DNA of 64,000 nt. Source: Syncephalis fuscata S228 (taxonomy: Eukaryota; Fungi; Zoopagomycota). The DNA is taken from positions 310,001 through 374,000 of the forward strand of contig JAHLTZ010000017.1 in NCBI GenBank assembly GCA_025786725.1, in the 5' to 3' direction. Numbering within the stretch: position 1 is the stretch's first letter; the number at the start of each line of letters is the position of its first letter. The notes under the pieces are model-generated. The model was given only the letters and a program-made list of their open reading frames with translations, was not told the DNA's origin and did not search any database. The position numbers and the translations under genes are program-made. Below are positions 31,988 to 64,000 of the stretch, in pieces.

Positions 31988-32655
31988 GACTAGCAATGTA
32001 AATAGAATACGCCTTATATACTCAAAATAGTAAAGCAAATAGCAAACGTTAAATTGCTCTTTATTGTTCACTTTTTCACTTTAATGCTATTACCATCTAG
32101 CCTTGGGTCTTTATAAATTAACTTTTTATCACATTACCAATTATGGTAATAGCAATTAATGGTGATTGCAGTATCACATGATTTATTTACACCTGGTATT
32201 CTTCACTTGCATTTTACGAAACAACAAACGGCACAGAACCTAGTTTAAATCCACTTTCCAGTGATCACCTGATCACCTAATAGTACTACAAACATCTTAG
32301 CCTTTTTAAAGAATTTACAATTTTAATCAGGTATGTAACACAATATTAAAATAGTTTCAATTAACAATTATAATGTCTATAATTTGTTTTGTTATTTGAT
32401 TAAACAAAATTAAAATGAAACCAAATGTTTATTGCTAGAATTTGGACAGCTGAATGAAAAAGCTAAATTCAGATTTGTAGTAATATAATGGTATCATTAA
32501 TTATAAGTTAAGTAAACCGGTGCATTGATCGGTAGTTGATATGCGAATGAACTAGACGGCAACTACTTAGAGGTCTTGCCGCCCCAAATGTATATCTAAA
32601 TGTATAGATTGATAATTCAGTCGTACTATCAATAGCAATGCCTTCGATAAGCCGG

Positions 32656-34515
32656 TTAATCTATGTTCATAAATTTATACAGCAAATTTCATGTAGTTAG
32701 TGTTTAAATCAACAATATATAAAATTATTTACCAACTATTAGTGCAAGTTATTAAACACACGCAGTGCATAAAGTGTAATTAGTTTATAACTATTTAATA
32801 TACAATGGCACTTACACCCTATCAACACAAGTTATTACACAAGAGCAGTACATAACATATGCTTAGTGTATCGATAATTTATATAAAATGCCACTTACGG
32901 ACTATTAATGTTGTTATTGAATACATACAGTGTATATCACATGGTCAGTATATATTTGGTTAGTACAAAGTTTCACCTACAAGCTACCAAATACACGCAG
33001 TACATAGAACATGTTTAATATACAGTTGAGTAATATACTATGTCACTTACGACCTATTGATAGCCGTTATTAAAAATGTAATCCATGCCGCATAATTAAT
33101 ATATAGCTGGTTAATATACAATGTCACTTACGTTCTATTAATACAAGCCATTAAACATACACATTGCATGGTATATATTTAGCGTATATTTGCCTAATAT
33201 ATAGAGTTATTTACCAGCTATTAATATAAGTCGTTAAACAGATAGATTGTGTGACATGTTTAACACATAACTAACTAAAACATAATTTCATTTACCAGCT
33301 ATTGATATAAGTTATTACACACACGTAGTGGATGATATATGCTTAGTAAATAGTTAATTAATATAAAATGTTATCTACCTTCTATTGGTGCAGGTTATCC
33401 ACATCAAATAATTTATGATTAGCGTATAAATAATTACTATACAATGTCACTTACTAGCTATTAATACAGATTATTACACAAATGTGCATGTCATATACTT
33501 AGTAAATTATCAATTAACATACAATGTCATTTACCAGTTGTTACTTCAAGATATTAAGCAATCACAGTACATAGCATAGGCTTAGTTTTTAGTCGATTAA
33601 TAAACAATGCCATTTACCAGCTATCGATATAGGTTATCAAGCAGACGTAGTGCATATCATATATTTAGTGAATGAACGATTAATATACAGTATCACTTAC
33701 GTTCTATCGATACAAATTATTATACAGATGAAATACCCGACATATGTTAGTACATAAATAGCTAATTTGCAATTCCACTTACTTCCTATTGATACAAGGG
33801 ATTACACATCATATGGTGCATGCTTAGTGTATAAATAATTAACATACAGTATTACTTACCCCCTAGCAATACAATTTATCATACAAGCATAGTATACAAT
33901 CTATATTTAGTGCGTAGCTATTTAATATATAATGCCATTTACCAACTATTAATATAAGCATTGCATAAACGTAGTACATAGCATATGCTTAGCATATAGT
34001 TAATTAATATGCAGCGTCATTTACCAACTATTGATACATGATATTAAACAACCACAGGGCATGATATTTTAGTATAATCGATTAATATAGCATTTTACTT
34101 ACAGGCTATTAATGTACGTTATTAAACAAATATGGTACATGTTATATGCTTAGCGTATAGCCAATAAATACACGACGTCACTTACCAACTATCAATACAG
34201 GTTAGTATACAGGCATGCATGCCACATACTTAGTGTATAGTCAATTAATACATAATTTCATTTACTTTCTATTAATACAAGTTATTAAACATAAAAATTA
34301 TATGGTGTATGTTTAGCATATAATAACTAATATATAATGACGCTTACGATCTATTAACGTGGTTTTTCAGTGTATACATTATTTAATTAAGTGAATGACT
34401 GATTATTGTAATACGACATACCACGACGGCCTAGAGTCGGCATGGCATCCACCGTAGCTGTGATAACTACCAAGGCCATAAAAATGGTACATACGACGCC
34501 AATAGAAAACTTCAT
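32656..34515 (-). CDS. Secreted prepro-peptide whose mature part is encoded by 21 consecutive 3-nt micro-exons: MKFSIGVVCTIFMALVVITATVDAMPTLGRR-DQIAFVGGKPAAKAAERPFRFD*
   Basis: Exon 1 is 34422-34515 (31 codons + G, donor GTATGT). Micro-exons (plus coordinates, minus sequence): 34348-50 ATC, 34266-68 AAA, 34186-88 TTG, 34103-05 CCT, 34025-27 TTG, 33943-45 TTG, 33860-62 GGG, 33783-85 GAA, 33701-03 AAC, 33618-20 CTG, 33535-37 CTG (acceptor CAA), 33455-57 CTA, 33379-81 AAG, 33296-98 CTG, 33215-17 CTG, 33132-34 AAC, 33051-53 GTC, 32981-83 CTT, 32899-901 TCC, 32816-18 GGT, 32733-35 TTG. Last exon starts at 32660 (AT TAA). 20/21 acceptors are TAG; all donors begin GTA. Confidence 0.8.
32661..34421 (-). 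repeat. Degenerate tandem array of intron + 3-nt exon units (70-83 bp period, 22 introns of 67-80 nt)
   Basis: Approximate minus-strand consensus: GTAAGTGACATTGTATATTAATTAACTATAYRCTAAGCATATG...TGTGTTTAATAACTTGTATTAATAG-NNN. Only the splice signals and the 3-nt spacing are nearly invariant. Confidence 0.9.
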
Positions 34516-35839
34516 GCTGGTATTGATTTGTTAAAATAAACAAGTAGAATGAACAATGCAAAATGCTAGGAATAAAATGAACAATGCAATGGTTTTGCAA
34601 AAGTAGAATGCGATGATGCTATCACTGGGTAGTTGTGTGTATTTTGTGGGCTATTTAAATATACGTCTGTCCTAGAGAATTAGAAAATGTATTCTATCGC
34701 CTATACCCTTGAGGTGCAATGTGGCCAATAAAGTGAATTCACATAATAGCTAGAAGTGCGCGTACAACAATATACCAATGACGTAGCAGTATGCAATCTA
34801 GTTCTTTATTCTAAACATGTTCGGCAATTACACAAGTGATTCAACAATGTAAATGATTTAACACATATGTTGTAAAATATGTTATCGACTGTTCTTGCGC
34901 GGTTACACAATTCAGCAATGGCGCGCAAGCTCAATCTACTAGTTTTCCAAAACAAAAACAATAAACTGTTGCACCTTTGATGTTGCCTTTGGTGTTATTT
35001 TCGCCGACAAATTCAGTTTCTAATATATTTATGAACATTGAAAACACGACTGCAATTCACTGGCACAAATAACATAATAAGATTGTATTTATTTACAATT
35101 CTTTAAACCACAAAAATGCACTGATCAGTTTTTCATGAATTATCTTGACATTTAATATTTGATTATGAAAATGAACGGTTTATTTTAGTATTGTACTACC
35201 AAATACTGCTAAAGGCTTTATCGCCAACAATTGATTGTTTTTATCAATTATTCATCGTTGTGTAATGACATTCTAATAATAAAACACTAGATTCGAGTAT
35301 CAACGTCATCGATTATTTGTTTATAAAGTGATGTAAAGGCAATAGAAAGCACCCACTAGGCCATCCTAGTTAAATATAGCTGATTTTGGGTGTACAACAG
35401 TAATATACGACATATCAATTGGCGACAATGATGTAAAAATAGTCTACTTGATAGTAACTCGATGGAAATAACCTGTTTTATTATGATTGTCATGGTTTGC
35501 AATAAGTGGACGTAGCAAATTGCATTGTTTTGAGTTGGACTAAAAGTTTGACTAGTCAACGGCTTTTAAAGGTATACGGCATTTTTATATTTAGAATACA
35601 TAACTAATATACGCTTTATATAAATATAAACATAATTGCACACACATTTATTTAATCATTAGTATTCTCATTAGTGTTGCTTTATTGTTATTAATTTGCA
35701 ATTTTGCAAGAACATATTTAAAATCCAACTTTATCAAATGGTTCCGTTTCCATAATTTTGTTTTGATTCAGTTTGCTTTGAATTTTAGCAATTTTTATCA
35801 CTTGTAACTGTAATAAATATTTATAATTATGCATTCGGC

Positions 35840-37535
35840 AGATTACAGTAATTAAATTAAGTTTATATTTGCATAAATACACTTTTAATATACTTGCTTT
35901 ATTGATGTTTTTTTAATTATTAGATGGTAATAAAATACGAAAGTAGATATAGCACACTAATTAAATATAATTGAAATGAAACCATATGTTTATTACTAAA
36001 GTTTGCACAGATGAATAGAGACGACTAATTCTGGCATATAGCAATATAATGGCGCCACTAGTTAAAGTTTAATAAACCGGAATATTGAATAAAACTTGAT
36101 ATAAGAATAGACTTGAATGGTAGTTGCTGGATGGTCTTGATTTTGCTAAATGTATACCTAAAGTTTATAGACTGGCAGCATGTTCACGTCACCAATGCCA
36201 GTGTTTTGGATGTGTCGATTACACTATTTTCATAAGTTTATACAAAATGTAACATAGTTAGCGTATAAATCAATACTATGTAATTCTACTTACTAACTAT
36301 AGATTGTTAAACACGCAGTGCGCAGTATGTTTAATGCATAGCTAATTGATATATACGTAACTTACCAGCTATTGATGGCAAATTATCGGGCACAATGCAT
36401 ATATTAATTTATAGCTAATTGCTATACAATGGCACTTACGTACTATTAGTGTCAAATTATTGGACACACAATACATAGCATATGTTAATTTATAGTTAAT
36501 TAATATACAATATCACTTACAAGCTATTAACATCAGGTAATCAAACAGTGTGTTATGTATTACCCACAGTAAATTAAACATAAATGATACATTCTATTAA
36601 TATGTAGCATTACTTACGATCTGGTAACATCGGTTAGGTAATGCAAGCAGTATTTAATTAGCTAAGTAGTTAATTATTGTAATACAATATATTACCACGA
36701 ATTGGAGCCGGCTTAGCATCCACCATGGCTGTAGCGGCTATCAAAGCCACGACAATGGCACAGATGGCGGCAATAGAAAGCTTCATGGTGATATGGATTT
36801 GTTAAGAAAAACAAACAAAATAAAAGAGTGTCTAGGGTAAAATAGATGCAATGAACGTTTGGCAGAAAGTAGAGTACGATGATAATGCTACTATTTAGTT
36901 GTGTGCATTTTGTGAGCTATTTAAGTTCATGTTTATTCCAAAGGATCAAGGAATGTATTCTATGGAATGTACGATTAAATGGAACCTAAACCAATAGGTT
37001 ACATCCATATGCTAACATAAAACATGTGTATAACAATATCAATGGTGTGTTAACATGTTGCCAAGTCTTTACTTCTATGCCCTTGGCAAATAATATACTG
37101 TAGGGTCTTTACTTTAATTTTTTAACAAATAACATGCTGCCAGATTTTACTTCAATTATTTTTAACAATTACGCAGATAAAATGGCAATATTAATGGTTC
37201 AACGTATATGTGGTGGAAATGTATATATTGATGTGTATTTTACCATTTCACATAGTTCAAACGTGCAGTGCAAACTAAATTGATTAATGCTACAGAAACA
37301 ATAGGGATGCATCGCTACACATTTGCTGTTGTTTTAGCCAAGGACCTCATTGCTCAATATCTGCATGCATCTCAAACAGCTCTTAGCGCTGATACAGCAA
37401 CAGCATCAATAAATTGGCCTTGTAGTGCTTTACGGCTATTTACTAGTGCGTAGGCTAATTATATTTTTAAATCATAAAAATGTACTGATTAGTTTGATCG
37501 TTTATTCAATTTGACATTGTAATCATTGCTTAAAA
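35840..37535 (+). repeat. About 1.7-kb duplication, copy B (intact copy)
   Basis: Matches 5496-7179. Confidence 0.95.
36219..36786 (-). CDS. Secreted peptide with five 3-nt micro-exons: MKLSIAAICAIVVALIAATAMVDAKPAPIR-DPLPVM*
   Basis: Exon 1 is 36696-36786 (30 codons + G, donor GTAATA). Micro-exons: 36618-20 ATC (CAG acceptor), 36521-23 CTT, 36440-42 TAC, 36366-68 CTG, 36294-96 TTA. Last exon starts at 36223 (TG TAA). First intron, last intron, 3' region and promoter are homologous to the 34515 gene. Confidence 0.8.
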
Positions 37536-55334: not shown

Positions 55335-58141
55335 TCAGTTAGTCTCTCGTTGAATACTGACAGTGGGGGATTGCCAAATATCATAATCATTATCAAGAGT
55401 ATGATCACCCAATGGGCGAAGTGCCAGTACCGTTAAATAGTAACGGCCATTAGGTAAATCCGATACAGTGTGCCGATCATCGAGCGATTCAACATCACCA
55501 GTCCAGGGAAGGGCCAGTTCATAATTATCGGGTGTGTCGTCATTACGGCTTAGTAATTCGCTAATACTATTAGGAACAATACCTAAAAGCTGTTTTGTTT
55601 CGGCCGAGTAAATACGAACAAAAGATAGGCGTGTTGCGTATTCAAGCCGAATGTAGACCCAAGGGAAATCGTAATTTTTCATACTATAGGTGGCCGTTTC
55701 GTTAGGAAGGGCAATCTGCGTATTATCATTTAAATTACGCAAGAATGGATAATTACTGGCCAGATTAAATACGTGAATATCACGGAGACGGCCCTTCATG
55801 CCTAAATAAGGCACATAGACGGCATCCTTACTGCTCGTACTACTATGACAGCGCCACGATGAATTTGCCGTTGGATCGATCGATAAATAGCCAGAATAAA
55901 CCCATCTTTCTGCTTCAGGGAGTGATCTTGGTGGTCGAATGGTTACGGTGATGTCACGTGACTCACCGGCTGGTATTTGAATTTCTTGAGTGGAGAAGGT
56001 CACAGCAGCGTAAATACGCTTTTGAAGTGGTGTAGCTGGGACCATTTGTGAGGCATTAAAGCTTTGTACCGATAGAGCAGGCTGGTGCCTTAAACGATAA
56101 GTTTTCGCCTCTTGATCGTTATTGAGAATTGTAATAGTTTTTTGAATAGTTGAAGTAGCATCTGCCTGTTGTTGCGTATCATTAAGTGCGAGACGAGATG
56201 GCGTAACACGAGTTTTGCTTATCAATGCTTGTTTTACATTGATCATGCCTGCACCCTGACGAGCTACCGACGAAGTAATCCAGTGCTTATTGATCGACTG
56301 CACTGTTGGTTTACCGGCATTTTGGAAGGCTTCTCGAATATGCGCTGCTGTAACATTTGTCTTGCCATAAGCTTGTAAATAAAGTGCAATTGATCCTGCA
56401 ATGTAGGGACTGGCCATTGAAGTGCCGCTAAGTGTAGCATAGCCGTTGCTAATTGTGAGTGGATAAGTCGAGTAGATTTGGCCGCCAGGAGCACCAATAT
56501 CGGGCTTAATCTCTAGCATAGGACCGGGGCCCCACGATGCAAAAGTCGACACTTGATTGCCATTAGGATTTGTAACATATCGAGCATCGGCTTCAAAAGT
56601 GGTAAATACCGTTTCATTGTCAGGCTTTGTTTTAATTGCTTCGACAAGCGCATTGCCATTGATGCTATTAATGCCTACTAATGGTAGTAGCGTTGGGTTG
56701 TCGAGTTTAGGCTGCAATGGTCCATCGACATTATTGTAAACGACGACGGCAATGGCACCGGCATTTTTAGCTATACGGGCCTTGTCGTCCATAACACAGC
56801 CACCACGTTTAACCAGCATAACATGACCAGTATAATTATTAACGAGTGCATTACAGCCATATTCGTTATTAGTATCGACGAGTGAGAATGGAACGTTTGT
56901 AAAATTAAGTGTATGGCCTGGATCGGCCGCTAGATACTCGATAGTATAGTCACTTTTAATATTCACGCTAAATATTGTAGCAAATACTTGGAGCTATCAA
57001 GCGCGGTCACCGATAAAGCATTATCAGAGAGTGCAGGTGACGATGTGGCCCACAATCCGGTCGTACCATCATTGCCGGCAGCTGCCACTACAATAATGCC
57101 ACGTTGTGCTAAACGGTCGGCTGCTAAGCCATCAGGAGCATCGGCCCATCGAACGGGCGAAACAATCGAAAGATTAACAATATCCATACCGTCGACGTAG
57201 GCCCGCTCCATACCAGCAATGACAAAATCAGAATCGGTATTTTCCTGGCAGCCAAATACTCGGTAGGCGCCCAGGATAGCGGCTGGCGCAACACCCGTCA
57301 CTTTGGTATCATTGCCACCAATAATACCGGCGACATGTGTACCATGGCCATTACAAGTATCACGAGGGTCTTCATCGGGCTTTTGCGTGCCAATGCCCGT
57401 AAAATTATCCCCAACAAAGTCGTAGCCATAGGCAACACGGCACCCTGGACCGAAACAGCCGCCCAATGCCGGATGCGTATAATCAATGCCAGAATCGACG
57501 ACACCGACTTTAATGCCATTACCGTTGTATTTTTGCTGCTCGTGAAGTTCTTTCACACCCGTTTCTTCGTGGATGGCATCAATTTGATTTACGGTAGCTA
57601 CAGTTGACTCATGAGGGCGGGCAATCGATTTAAGTGTCCATACAGCAATAACATTGTCAAGACTTTTAATACGTTCAATATTATCGGCTGCTGTATCAAC
57701 GCTGATGGCATTTAATAAATTTGCAAACGATAATCGTGGAGTAAATTTAATACCAGCATTTGTCATTTTTGTGCGTAATTCATCGTGTTGTTTTAGTCTA
57801 TCATTGCCGACATCGGCAAGTTCAATCATAAGAATAGCTTGGATTATATTTTTGGTATTTTCTGTTGATGGTACTGCTTCTGTAGAAGTAGTGCTATTGT
57901 TAATGATAGTTGCATTAATGCTAGTAGTAGTTGTTGTTGTTGTATTGGTACCGGTGGTATGTGTAATGTTACTATTGCTAATAATAGGTATATTAGCAGT
58001 AGTGGCGATGTTAGAATCAATGGTAGCTGTGCTGTTATTATTGATATTGTTATTATTATCAGTGATGGAGACTGCTACGGCTTGGTGAACGACTTGCAGC
58101 ACAGCTGCAACGCAAACGATCAAAGCAAAACGAATTTGCAT
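55335..58141 (-). CDS. Secreted S8 subtilisin with PA and Fn3-like (DUF1034) domains; apparent frameshift near 56965
   Basis: Signal peptide; catalytic motifs VGVVDSGIDY, GHGTHVAGI and SGTSMASPY; PA domain VKRGGC..DDKA; RQGAGMINV. Confidence 0.92.
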
Positions 58142-58549
58142 GTTCTTTTTATGAATAGTGGAAACGGGAAGACAACCGGGGAGAAACAATAGAGTATACG
58201 ATAACCAGGATCGTATCTAAAGTAGACGAATTGTAAACTAGTAAAGAATTGGAATATTTAAAGACTAAAAATAAAAAAGCCACACTAGTCGACTATATAT
58301 GTATTGGATAGGTCAGAATTCGTGAAAGCCGTAGTCGACTCCTAGATATTCCGGCAATATTAAATTGGAGTATCACCTTCCATATAAGGTATATTTAGAT
58401 ATTATATTTTAAACTACGATACTTAAAATAGACAATTGCCATAAATTAACAGCTATAGAAATCCATTTAAATCTAATAGCACACCATTGGTTCGGTTAAA
58501 TTATAGTAAAAAATAAAAAACTAAAATAGATACACAGTTTATTTCTGAT

Positions 58550-62985: not shown

Positions 62986-64000
62986 ATGCGACTTTTATCA
63001 ACTATTATCTCTACTCTTTCATTACTGGCGGTAATACAGACCAGTACGACAATTGGTGGTCCAGTGGGTCGTACAAGCTCAAGTAAGCAGTCGACTGCAT
63101 TACCACGCCTTTTGGCACGCGATACACCTATAGAAACCGTTATCAATGATCAGTCGACCGTTGTGGCCGAGCCCTATAATACATACGTTATCGAGTTTGA
63201 CGTGGACTCGGAAGTTTCTTCAAGCGACGCACTTAGTAATTTTCGTGGACAGCTCACTGCAGCCAATATCACCTACACTGAACGATATGTCTATAATACA
63301 GCACTGAAAGGCATTAGTTTGCAAACAACAAATGACCAATATCGTCAACTTAGTTCACTGGGCCTGGTCAAGAAAATCTGGCCTGTACATGTGGCAGTCA
63401 GTTCACCGGCTGTTGTTGTCGCCAATAGCCAAGTCAATCAACTAAGCCTGGTACATCAAATGACCGGTGTTACCAAAGTACAAACCAACCTTAAACTCAA
63501 TGGTAGCGGCATTAAGGTTGGCATTGTTGACTCTGGCGTTGATTATCGCCATCCAGCACTGGGCGGTTGTTTTGGTGCTGGGTGCCGTGTTGCCTACGGC
63601 TACGATTTCGTCGGCGATAAATTCGATGATACAAGCATTCCTGTGGCCGATAATGACCCTCTTGATACTTGCAGCGGACATGGCACTCATGTTGCCGGCA
63701 TTATTGGTGCCAACAGCGCAGTGGTAACAGGTGTTGCACCTAATGTTATTTTCGGTGCCTACCGTATTACTTCATGCAGTGGTCAAACATTTTCTGATAT
63801 CACTGTGGCCGGTATGGAACGTGCCTACGCCGATGGCATGGATATTATTAATCTATCGATGATCAGCGAGAATCCATGGCCCACATTTACAACGGCGCTT
63901 GCGGCCGAACGTATAACAGCTCTTGGTGTGCACGTAGTAGGTGCCGCCGGTAATAGCGGTTTACTTGGACTATGGCTAGAAAGTGCGCCAGGTGCAGCGC
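62986..64000 (+). CDS. Second secreted S8 subtilisin (5' part; runs off the window); paralog of 55335-58141
   Basis: MRLLSTIISTLSLLAV signal peptide; I9-like prodomain; IKVGIVDSGVDYRHPALGGCFGAGCRVAYGYDFVGD; GHGTHVAGIIGA; AAGNSG. Confidence 0.92.
   Translation, partial: MRLLSTIISTLSLLAVIQTSTTIGGPVGRTSSSKQSTALPRLLARDTPIETVINDQSTVVAEPYNTYVIEFDVDSEVSSSDALSNFRGQLTAANITYTERYVYNTALKGISLQTTNDQYRQLSSLGLVKKIWPVHVAVSSPAVVVANSQVNQLSLVHQMTGVTKVQTNLKLNGSGIKVGIVDSGVDYRHPALGGCFGAGCRVAYGYDFVGDKFDDTSIPVADNDPLDTCSGHGTHVAGIIGANSAVVTGVAPNVIFGAYRITSCSGQTFSDITVAGMERAYADGMDIINLSMISENPWPTFTTALAAERITALGVHVVGAAGNSGLLGLWLESAPGAA

Follow-up and report, generated by a model that had tools for sequence, protein, structure and literature searches.

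Gene A extends from position 34515 to 32656 on the minus strand of the window (the whole 64,000-nt stretch of Syncephalis fuscata DNA that was analysed), and is built from a leader exon of 94 nt, a ladder of 21 units, and a terminal exon of 5 nt. A TATA-like box (34651..34660, minus strand), which belongs to a promoter block conserved across the family described below, lies ~143 nt 5' of the ATG. Exon 1 (34422..34515) ends in phase 1 and encodes a signal-peptide-like segment followed by a short pro-peptide with an Arg-Arg end, a putative Kex2-type site. Micro-exons 1-10 (33618..34350) are 3 nt each (first bases at 34350, 34268, 34188, 34105, 34027, 33945, 33862, 33785, 33703, and 33620) and are separated by introns of 74-80 nt. 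They are followed by unit 11, for which the likeliest form is a 9-nt exon with a canonical AAG acceptor (33535..33543), and by micro-exons 12-21 (32733..33457), again of 3 nt each (first bases at 33457, 33381, 33298, 33217, 33134, 33053, 32983, 32901, 32818, and 32735), with introns of 67-80 nt. The last coding exon (32660-32656) supplies 2 nt and the stop codon. The adjoining 3' UTR block (32394..32655, minus strand) contains AATAAA at 32433-32428 and is ~70% identical to the corresponding blocks of ladder and intronless paralogues. The promoter, leader, stop, and poly(A) motif of gene A are intact.

The initial annotation of this region described a run of TAG-3 nt-GTA units on the minus strand of 32656-34515, set between a phase-1 leader exon and a final exon, with introns of 67-80 nt and a joined reading free of internal stops. 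All of these features were recovered, the units numbering 20 plus one with CAA in place of TAG (33537-33535), and the accompanying base-composition counts (A or T at the middle base of 17/21 exons, G or C at the last base of 15/21) were correct on recomputation. The phrase "one codon per exon" holds for the exon length of 3 nt, but the phase-1 register means that each codon is split over two exons. GT is present at 22/22 donors and an acceptor is in place at 21/22; the splice ends are invariant, and divergence between the intron bodies has reached one third. All introns are copies of one repeat unit, with a mutual identity of 65% vs. 51% for shuffles, and a CTAA motif resembling a branch site is conserved in them, 32 nt downstream of the donor and 38-45 nt upstream of the acceptor. 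The motif YAG-N3-GTA has 21 matches in the gene A region, comprising 20 ladder units and one chance intronic match, vs. 0-6 matches in 1000 shuffles; acceptor-donor spacings of 0-2 and 4-6 nt give zero matches, with 3 nt alone enriched. The longest strict-motif chain in the window is 10 units, vs. 3 in 100 whole-window shuffles. The absence of stops in gene A, taken alone, is not significant (P=0.42, exon order permuted); thus, the case for this gene rests on its relatives.

At unit 11, where CAA stands in the position expected for the TAG acceptor, a canonical AAG located 6 nt upstream would give a 9-nt in-frame exon (33543-33535). The unit might be spliced in this form, as a 3-nt exon after CAA, or be skipped, and the reading frame is kept in all three cases. 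The 9-nt reading is preferred because the paralogues exhibit similar acceptor slippage, upstream and by threes, giving 6-nt exons. A predicted gene A product of 55 aa is therefore more likely than one of 53 aa, and the exact peptide proposed in the initial annotation is probably in error at unit 11. Beyond the Arg-Arg site, the product is predicted to contain a mature peptide of 22-24 residues that lacks cysteine. There are two units in the whole family that have no AG at the usual place. The second, also with CAA for the acceptor, is in the ladder at the gene I locus (L131:10244-10249), where the intron has no upstream AG; this unit is probably a skipped exon or one that uses an AA acceptor.

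A search covering similar-length proteins yielded no homologues of the unspliced exon-1 ORF of gene A, and its triplets found no match in the five intronless paralogues and four further ladders compared. In the syntenic region of S. plumigaleata (L001), the MgtE-like gene is the immediate neighbour of the septin gene, with no RCC1-like gene and neither of the ladder genes in between, and no gene A orthologue was found there. The aminopeptidase encoded in the window (ORF 21593-22891), which has 100% identity to an S. fuscata protein from a 535-kb contig of assembly GCA_025786725.1, is inverted in the same S. plumigaleata sequence, where it lies between two inverted-repeat copies.

Three relatives of gene A are present inside the window. 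Gene B (36219..36786, minus strand) has the same leader, five 3-nt exons, and a six-residue mature part. Gene C (5873..6434, minus strand) duplicates gene B at 98.9% identity but has lost a single base at each of twelve sites, two of them in exon 1, which suggests a pseudogene, or else a long-read consensus error or low-quality assembly copy. Both genes are borne by a 1.7-kb duplication (5496-7179 vs. 35840-37535, 98.9% identity), in which all twelve indels are deletions in the C copy. Gene D (17964..18197, plus strand) is intronless and encodes a 77-residue secreted-type peptide with the same leader and eight cysteines in the mature part. There is no gene at this position in the deposited annotation, and the peptide has no match in Pfam; its flanks and those of ladder gene E share 77-82% identity. 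Dispersed intergenic repeats of ~80% identity (7539-8168, 15338-15525, and 18466-19499) also flank family genes on other contigs, and are possibly mobile-element relics that aided the spread of the family. The window additionally encodes a large subtilisin-like protease (55335-58189) in two overlapping ORFs, indicative of a frameshift or short intron, and an inverted fragment related to this protease is located at the end of the window (63498-63860).

A leader profile built from three window leaders matched 17 proteins of S. fuscata plus one encoded on a metagenome contig, with no flatworm protein among the matches; another search added one protein. The family loci that were read comprise nine ladders (5-35 units) and five intronless genes. 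The ladders on other contigs are gene E (L003, 35 units), gene F (L006, 28 units), gene G (L007, 28 units), gene H (L130, 17 units), gene I (L131, 31 units), and gene J (L132, 29 units); the intronless members besides gene D are P0135, P0131, P0123, and P0128. Common to the family are the promoter block with its TATA-like box (138-145 nt upstream of the ATG in 6/11 members aligned), the leader, the phase-1 junction (at nucleotide 94; 91 in gene B), and a 3' UTR block with AATAAA at its end. The leader is hydrophobic with a conserved Val-Asp-Ala end; signal peptide and Kex2 cut were both assigned by eye. Exons were called with a greedy splice-site score and some manual curation (ends, insertions, and the two units without a canonical acceptor). 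The family peptides had no sequence match in Pfam or PDB; the queries for sequence searches were single exons or annotated proteins. Degenerate extra leader copies adjoin family genes on two contigs (L004:10745 and 12015; L006:13402, minus strand), the two L004 copies being identical across the stretch read. Additionally, the same leader occurs in an intronless sequence of another, more G+C-rich organism (L009:580-1015; ENA ERZ1505404), which has an early in-frame stop ahead of a cysteine-containing region.

All internal exons of the eight distinct ladder genes are multiples of three (194/194). Seven of these genes contain 165 internal exons, of which 158 are 3 nt and the others 6, 9, 15, 21, or 27 nt, and have 0 stops in 188 codons vs. 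7.7 expected (P=4e-5, exon-order permutation); gene J has 29 internal exons (27 of 3 nt, one of 9, and one of 33), also without a stop. Information content in the ladders is 1.4-2 bits at splice positions vs. 0.01-0.19 bits at the three exon positions. G+C content follows codon position, with 32% at the middle (wobble) base, 54% at the outer two bases, and 25% in introns. In a triplet-wise comparison of paralogues, gene E proved collinear, through its 35 micro-exons, with the phase-1 triplets of intronless P0135 (71/105 identical, 68%, with one whole-triplet gap), with an alignment score of 27.0 vs. a null of 7.8 +/- 1.5 (maximum 12.8, 300 permutations). Genes E and G also match intronless P0123, and the gene J ladder has 10/13 residues in common with the annotated protein P0127 across a four-cysteine motif. 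The repetition of the triplets, in order, by intronless sister genes indicates that the ladders represent real genes missed by annotation. The deposited model of gene E (P0121) has a canonical parse of exon 1 and two 3-nt exons, followed by a retained intron. More generally, deposited ladder models read through an intron after at most a few micro-exons, and three have no canonical parse; these faults could reflect incomplete splicing or aligner failure. All deposited ladder models examined are wrong beyond the first few exons. The principal proposal of the initial annotation, a secreted-peptide gene of serial 3-nt exons, gains support from eight further ladder loci with the same leader, from the frame-preserving length of every internal exon, from a paralogue whose micro-exons are collinear with an intronless gene, and from the one deposited model that parses with two 3-nt exons. 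On this sequence evidence, we assign a probability of about 0.93 to the ladders of the family being spliced as exons, and consider it likely that gene A itself is spliced in this way.

Across the family, ladder introns are 63-94 nt (insertions aside), with 70-72% identity among introns within genes E, G, H, and I. Intron pairs three units apart in gene E are 90-92% identical; in gene G, introns 7/11, 8/12, and 10/14 are 94-100% identical, a period of four that equals the CxxxC spacing. These patterns indicate ladder growth through the tandem duplication of whole units, intron and exon together. In the window and nine other S. fuscata loci, all matches to the intron unit fell inside ladders. 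Genes G, H, and I each contain, inside a ladder intron, a related antisense insertion with an AT-rich tail (L007:10757-11240; L130:11250-11575; L131:10750-11150). It is positioned ~16 nt after the donor, with a 15-16 nt target-site duplication seen in two copies and a tRNA-like head in one, and is absent elsewhere in the S. fuscata DNA examined. This insertion resembles a non-LTR element or SINE with the ladder unit as its target, and the presence of tailed insertions with target duplications in ladder introns suggests reverse transcriptase activity near family genes.

Between gene E and its intronless relatives, the leader is 84-92% identical and the mature region is diverging faster; for P0135, identity is 84% in the leader, 88% in the 3' flank, and 68% in the mature part. 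By analogy, this fast divergence of the mature part resembles that of peptide toxins and effectors. The intronless genes have no donor remnant at the first junction, and their homology to the common 3' flank resumes at the stop. For the mature part of P0135, the predicted fold is a two-helix hairpin (pLDDT 89.5); its best Foldseek matches were alpha-hairpinin-like peptides (nigellin and vicilin-buried peptides), at E-values of 5.9-7.6 that are not significant. Paired CxxxC helices are predicted for the subgroup composed of E, G, P0135, and P0123.

An array of this kind might instead be a non-coding minisatellite behind an unspliced 42-residue ORF, or one large intron, with AG-3 nt-GT as a frozen accident that was copied along with the unit. 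The ladder introns are indeed homologous tandem repeats, metagenome satellites and even CRISPR arrays fit the same pattern, and exon 1 of gene A reads through to a stop at codon 43. However, the triplets of a satellite should match the conservation of the unit, whereas ladder triplets are the least conserved positions and are flanked by invariant signals; given also that gene E triplets reproduce an intronless gene in order, and that stops are avoided family-wide, we regard a minisatellite as very improbable. Even less credible is that the units are recursive-splicing (ratchet) sites whose triplets are discarded. Recursive sites of animals do consist of tight acceptor/donor pairs, but those sites are AG-GT without a spacer and lie in very long introns, and discarded triplets would be expected to lose the codon-position bias, the open frame, and the homology to intronless genes. 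It might also be that the family is genuine, with gene A itself decaying or partly spliced, as a pseudogene or a source of mainly exon-skipped short products. The altered acceptor at unit 11, an intron likeness below that within genes E, G, H, and I (65% vs. 70-72%), the absence of cysteines and of a matching protein in the collections searched, and the damaged copy of gene B in the same window would all be in keeping with decay. We nevertheless consider it improbable, as every donor and all but one acceptor have kept their place despite the divergence of the introns, the elements from promoter to poly(A) motif are intact, and unit 11 has an in-frame rescue acceptor.

The two gene forms could be related in either direction. 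Comparison of the sequences suggests that the intronless copies are likely to have arisen by cDNA-mediated intron loss, which is favoured because one loss is simpler than 35 insertions. The opposite polarity, in which intronless genes are ancestral and ladders result from repeated phase-1 insertion of an Introner-like intron-generating mobile element at successive codons, would account for the coexistence of both forms and for the homology of all ladder introns, which resembles that of Introner copies. Nevertheless, it would demand ~35 separate insertions exactly 3 nt apart, and is at odds with the joint duplication of adjoining intron and exon blocks and with the restriction of the intron unit to ladders in the S. 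fuscata DNA examined. Furthermore, P0135 has both copies of an exon block for which the gene E introns are 90% identical, although gene conversion between introns could blur this relationship. We judge an insertional origin of the ladders to be unlikely, and retain cDNA-mediated loss as the preferred explanation for the intronless genes.

For the ladder transcripts, we propose that the spliceosome would remove the 70-80 nt introns singly by intron definition, retaining each 3-nt exon, at a distance of ~40 nt between branch-like motif and acceptor. In intron-definition organisms, a short intron can be recognised as a unit, and splicing is then not necessarily limited by the size of the exons. 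The precursor would then be secreted, and cleaved after Arg-Arg or Lys-Arg. The contribution of every unit is three bases in one constant phase, so the frame survives duplication, deletion, three-base slippage, and skipping alike; the ladder may thus serve as a safe generator of peptide diversity, in which the duplication, loss, or skipping of a unit makes the peptide longer or shorter by one residue. Intronless paralogues would be formed by recombination of the cDNA of a fully spliced transcript into a gene copy. Syncephalis species are haustorial parasites of Mucorales fungi, and S. fuscata is not known to cause disease in people, animals, or crops. The family peptides may be active where the parasite meets its host fungus or competing microbes. 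Lifestyle and family pattern, taken by analogy, tilt the balance slightly toward a role in host interaction; the label "effector" applied to gene A in the initial annotation is inferential.

A pattern scan of metagenomes returned at least 120 contigs. Constant-triplet arrays beside cas genes (L014, L030, L031, L062, and L090) were rejected as ladders and constitute a CRISPR class of false positives, the arrays of L014, L031, and L090 being cyanobacterial CRISPR repeats; among the many further matches that were rejected are plain tandem repeats and satellites. Among the matches listed, AT-rich contigs (L011, L032, L068, L093, L105, L106, and L122; WNFZ/WNGA/WNGF, 16-23% G+C) carry phase-1 ladders with up to 20 or more diverse 3-nt exons, and ladders of this type have no stop in 90 exons in eight contigs (P=0.008, among the matches listed). 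In L011 and L032 the ladder leads, with the frame kept, into exon 1 of a protein kinase gene. By its kinase type and base composition, this group may resemble the expanded kinases of arbuscular mycorrhizal fungi, which are possibly the source of these ladders. Introns of Syncephalis and of the AT-rich kinase-linked ladders have no homology to each other (0.504 vs. 0.492 for shuffles). Also among the matches listed, soil and root metagenome contigs of 39-44% G+C (L034, L086, L095, L114, L041, and L098) contain apparent phase-0 ladders of 16-35 three-base exons, each one whole codon, with no stops, diverged introns, and branch-like motifs; that of L041 adjoins a NACHT-like gene fragment. We lean, by a narrow measure, toward 3-nt exon ladders being a general, unannotated architecture of fungal genes that has arisen more than once. 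If so, they would amount to a codon-resolution construction kit, in which duplication, loss, and skipping of units write new peptides or variable kinase ends, and versions that succeed become fixed, through reverse transcription, as genes without introns. Syncephalis would then provide the first worked example, with the kinase-linked phase-1 and the phase-0 metagenome ladders as independent cases.

At family level the ladder architecture is well supported, and for gene A it is probable. In line with the initial annotation, which knew of no described fungal gene of this type, the literature searched (with subscription journals mostly outside its coverage) contained no report of serial 3-nt exons in fungi or of the Syncephalis family. 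A succession of 20-35 consecutive 3-nt exons would represent splicing at its smallest scale, and offers a test bed for intron definition and for steric limits on exon recognition. Living paralogue pairs with 35 and zero introns provide material on cDNA-mediated mass intron loss. Because ladder genes are missed or mis-spliced by gene finders and short-read aligners, the small secreted peptides of early-diverging fungi are likely to be under-counted; this family adds new candidate antifungal or host-modulating peptides from a mycoparasite.

Micro-exons of 3 nt in animals, plants, and fungi are isolated ones: each is spliced with the frame preserved and has ordinary exons on both sides, whereas those of Syncephalis make up the whole mature coding region. 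The family resembles prepro-peptides of the conotoxin or defensin type in its constant signal and pro-region, dibasic site, and fast-changing, often cysteine-rich mature part. It differs from these, and from alpha-hairpinins, in its use of codon-scale exons. Alpha-hairpinins have two CxxxC helices in a hairpin, as predicted for P0135 (with structural matches at E-values above 5), whereas gene A has no cysteine and hence falls outside that class. Introner elements supply many homologous short spliceosomal introns to one genome, dispersed over unrelated genes; by contrast, all copies of the Syncephalis intron unit in the window and nine other loci belong to the tandem ladders of a single gene family.

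The closest parallel is with the micro-exon genes (MEGs) of Schistosoma, in which a signal-peptide exon precedes a coding region made of nearly all tiny symmetric exons, and whose products are secreted at the parasite-host interface; the genes are missed by automatic annotation and enriched in mobile elements (10.1101/2023.06.21.545858; PMC4350168). MEGs have 10-20 small exons per gene and are described as flatworm-restricted (10.1101/2023.06.21.545858; PMC4350168); the exons are mostly 15 nt (range 3-81 or 6-81), with introns of 0.1-5 kb (10.1101/2023.06.21.545858). As in MEGs, the coding region of the Syncephalis family consists mostly of very small symmetric exons (each a multiple of three). 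The hydrophobic leader, signal-peptide-like as judged by eye, would direct the product to secretion. A further trait of MEGs is the production of variant proteins through exon skipping. Unlike MEGs, 95% of the internal exons are 3 nt, with up to 35 in a row, the introns are homologous repeats of 70-80 nt, and intronless paralogues exist. Moreover, the host genome is that of a zoopagalean fungus, and the family has no MEG sequence motif and no flatworm match to its leader. The Syncephalis ladder works like a MEG but is not one, as it differs in intron length, exon size, taxon, and homology; it is an extreme, independently evolved variant of the micro-exon gene.
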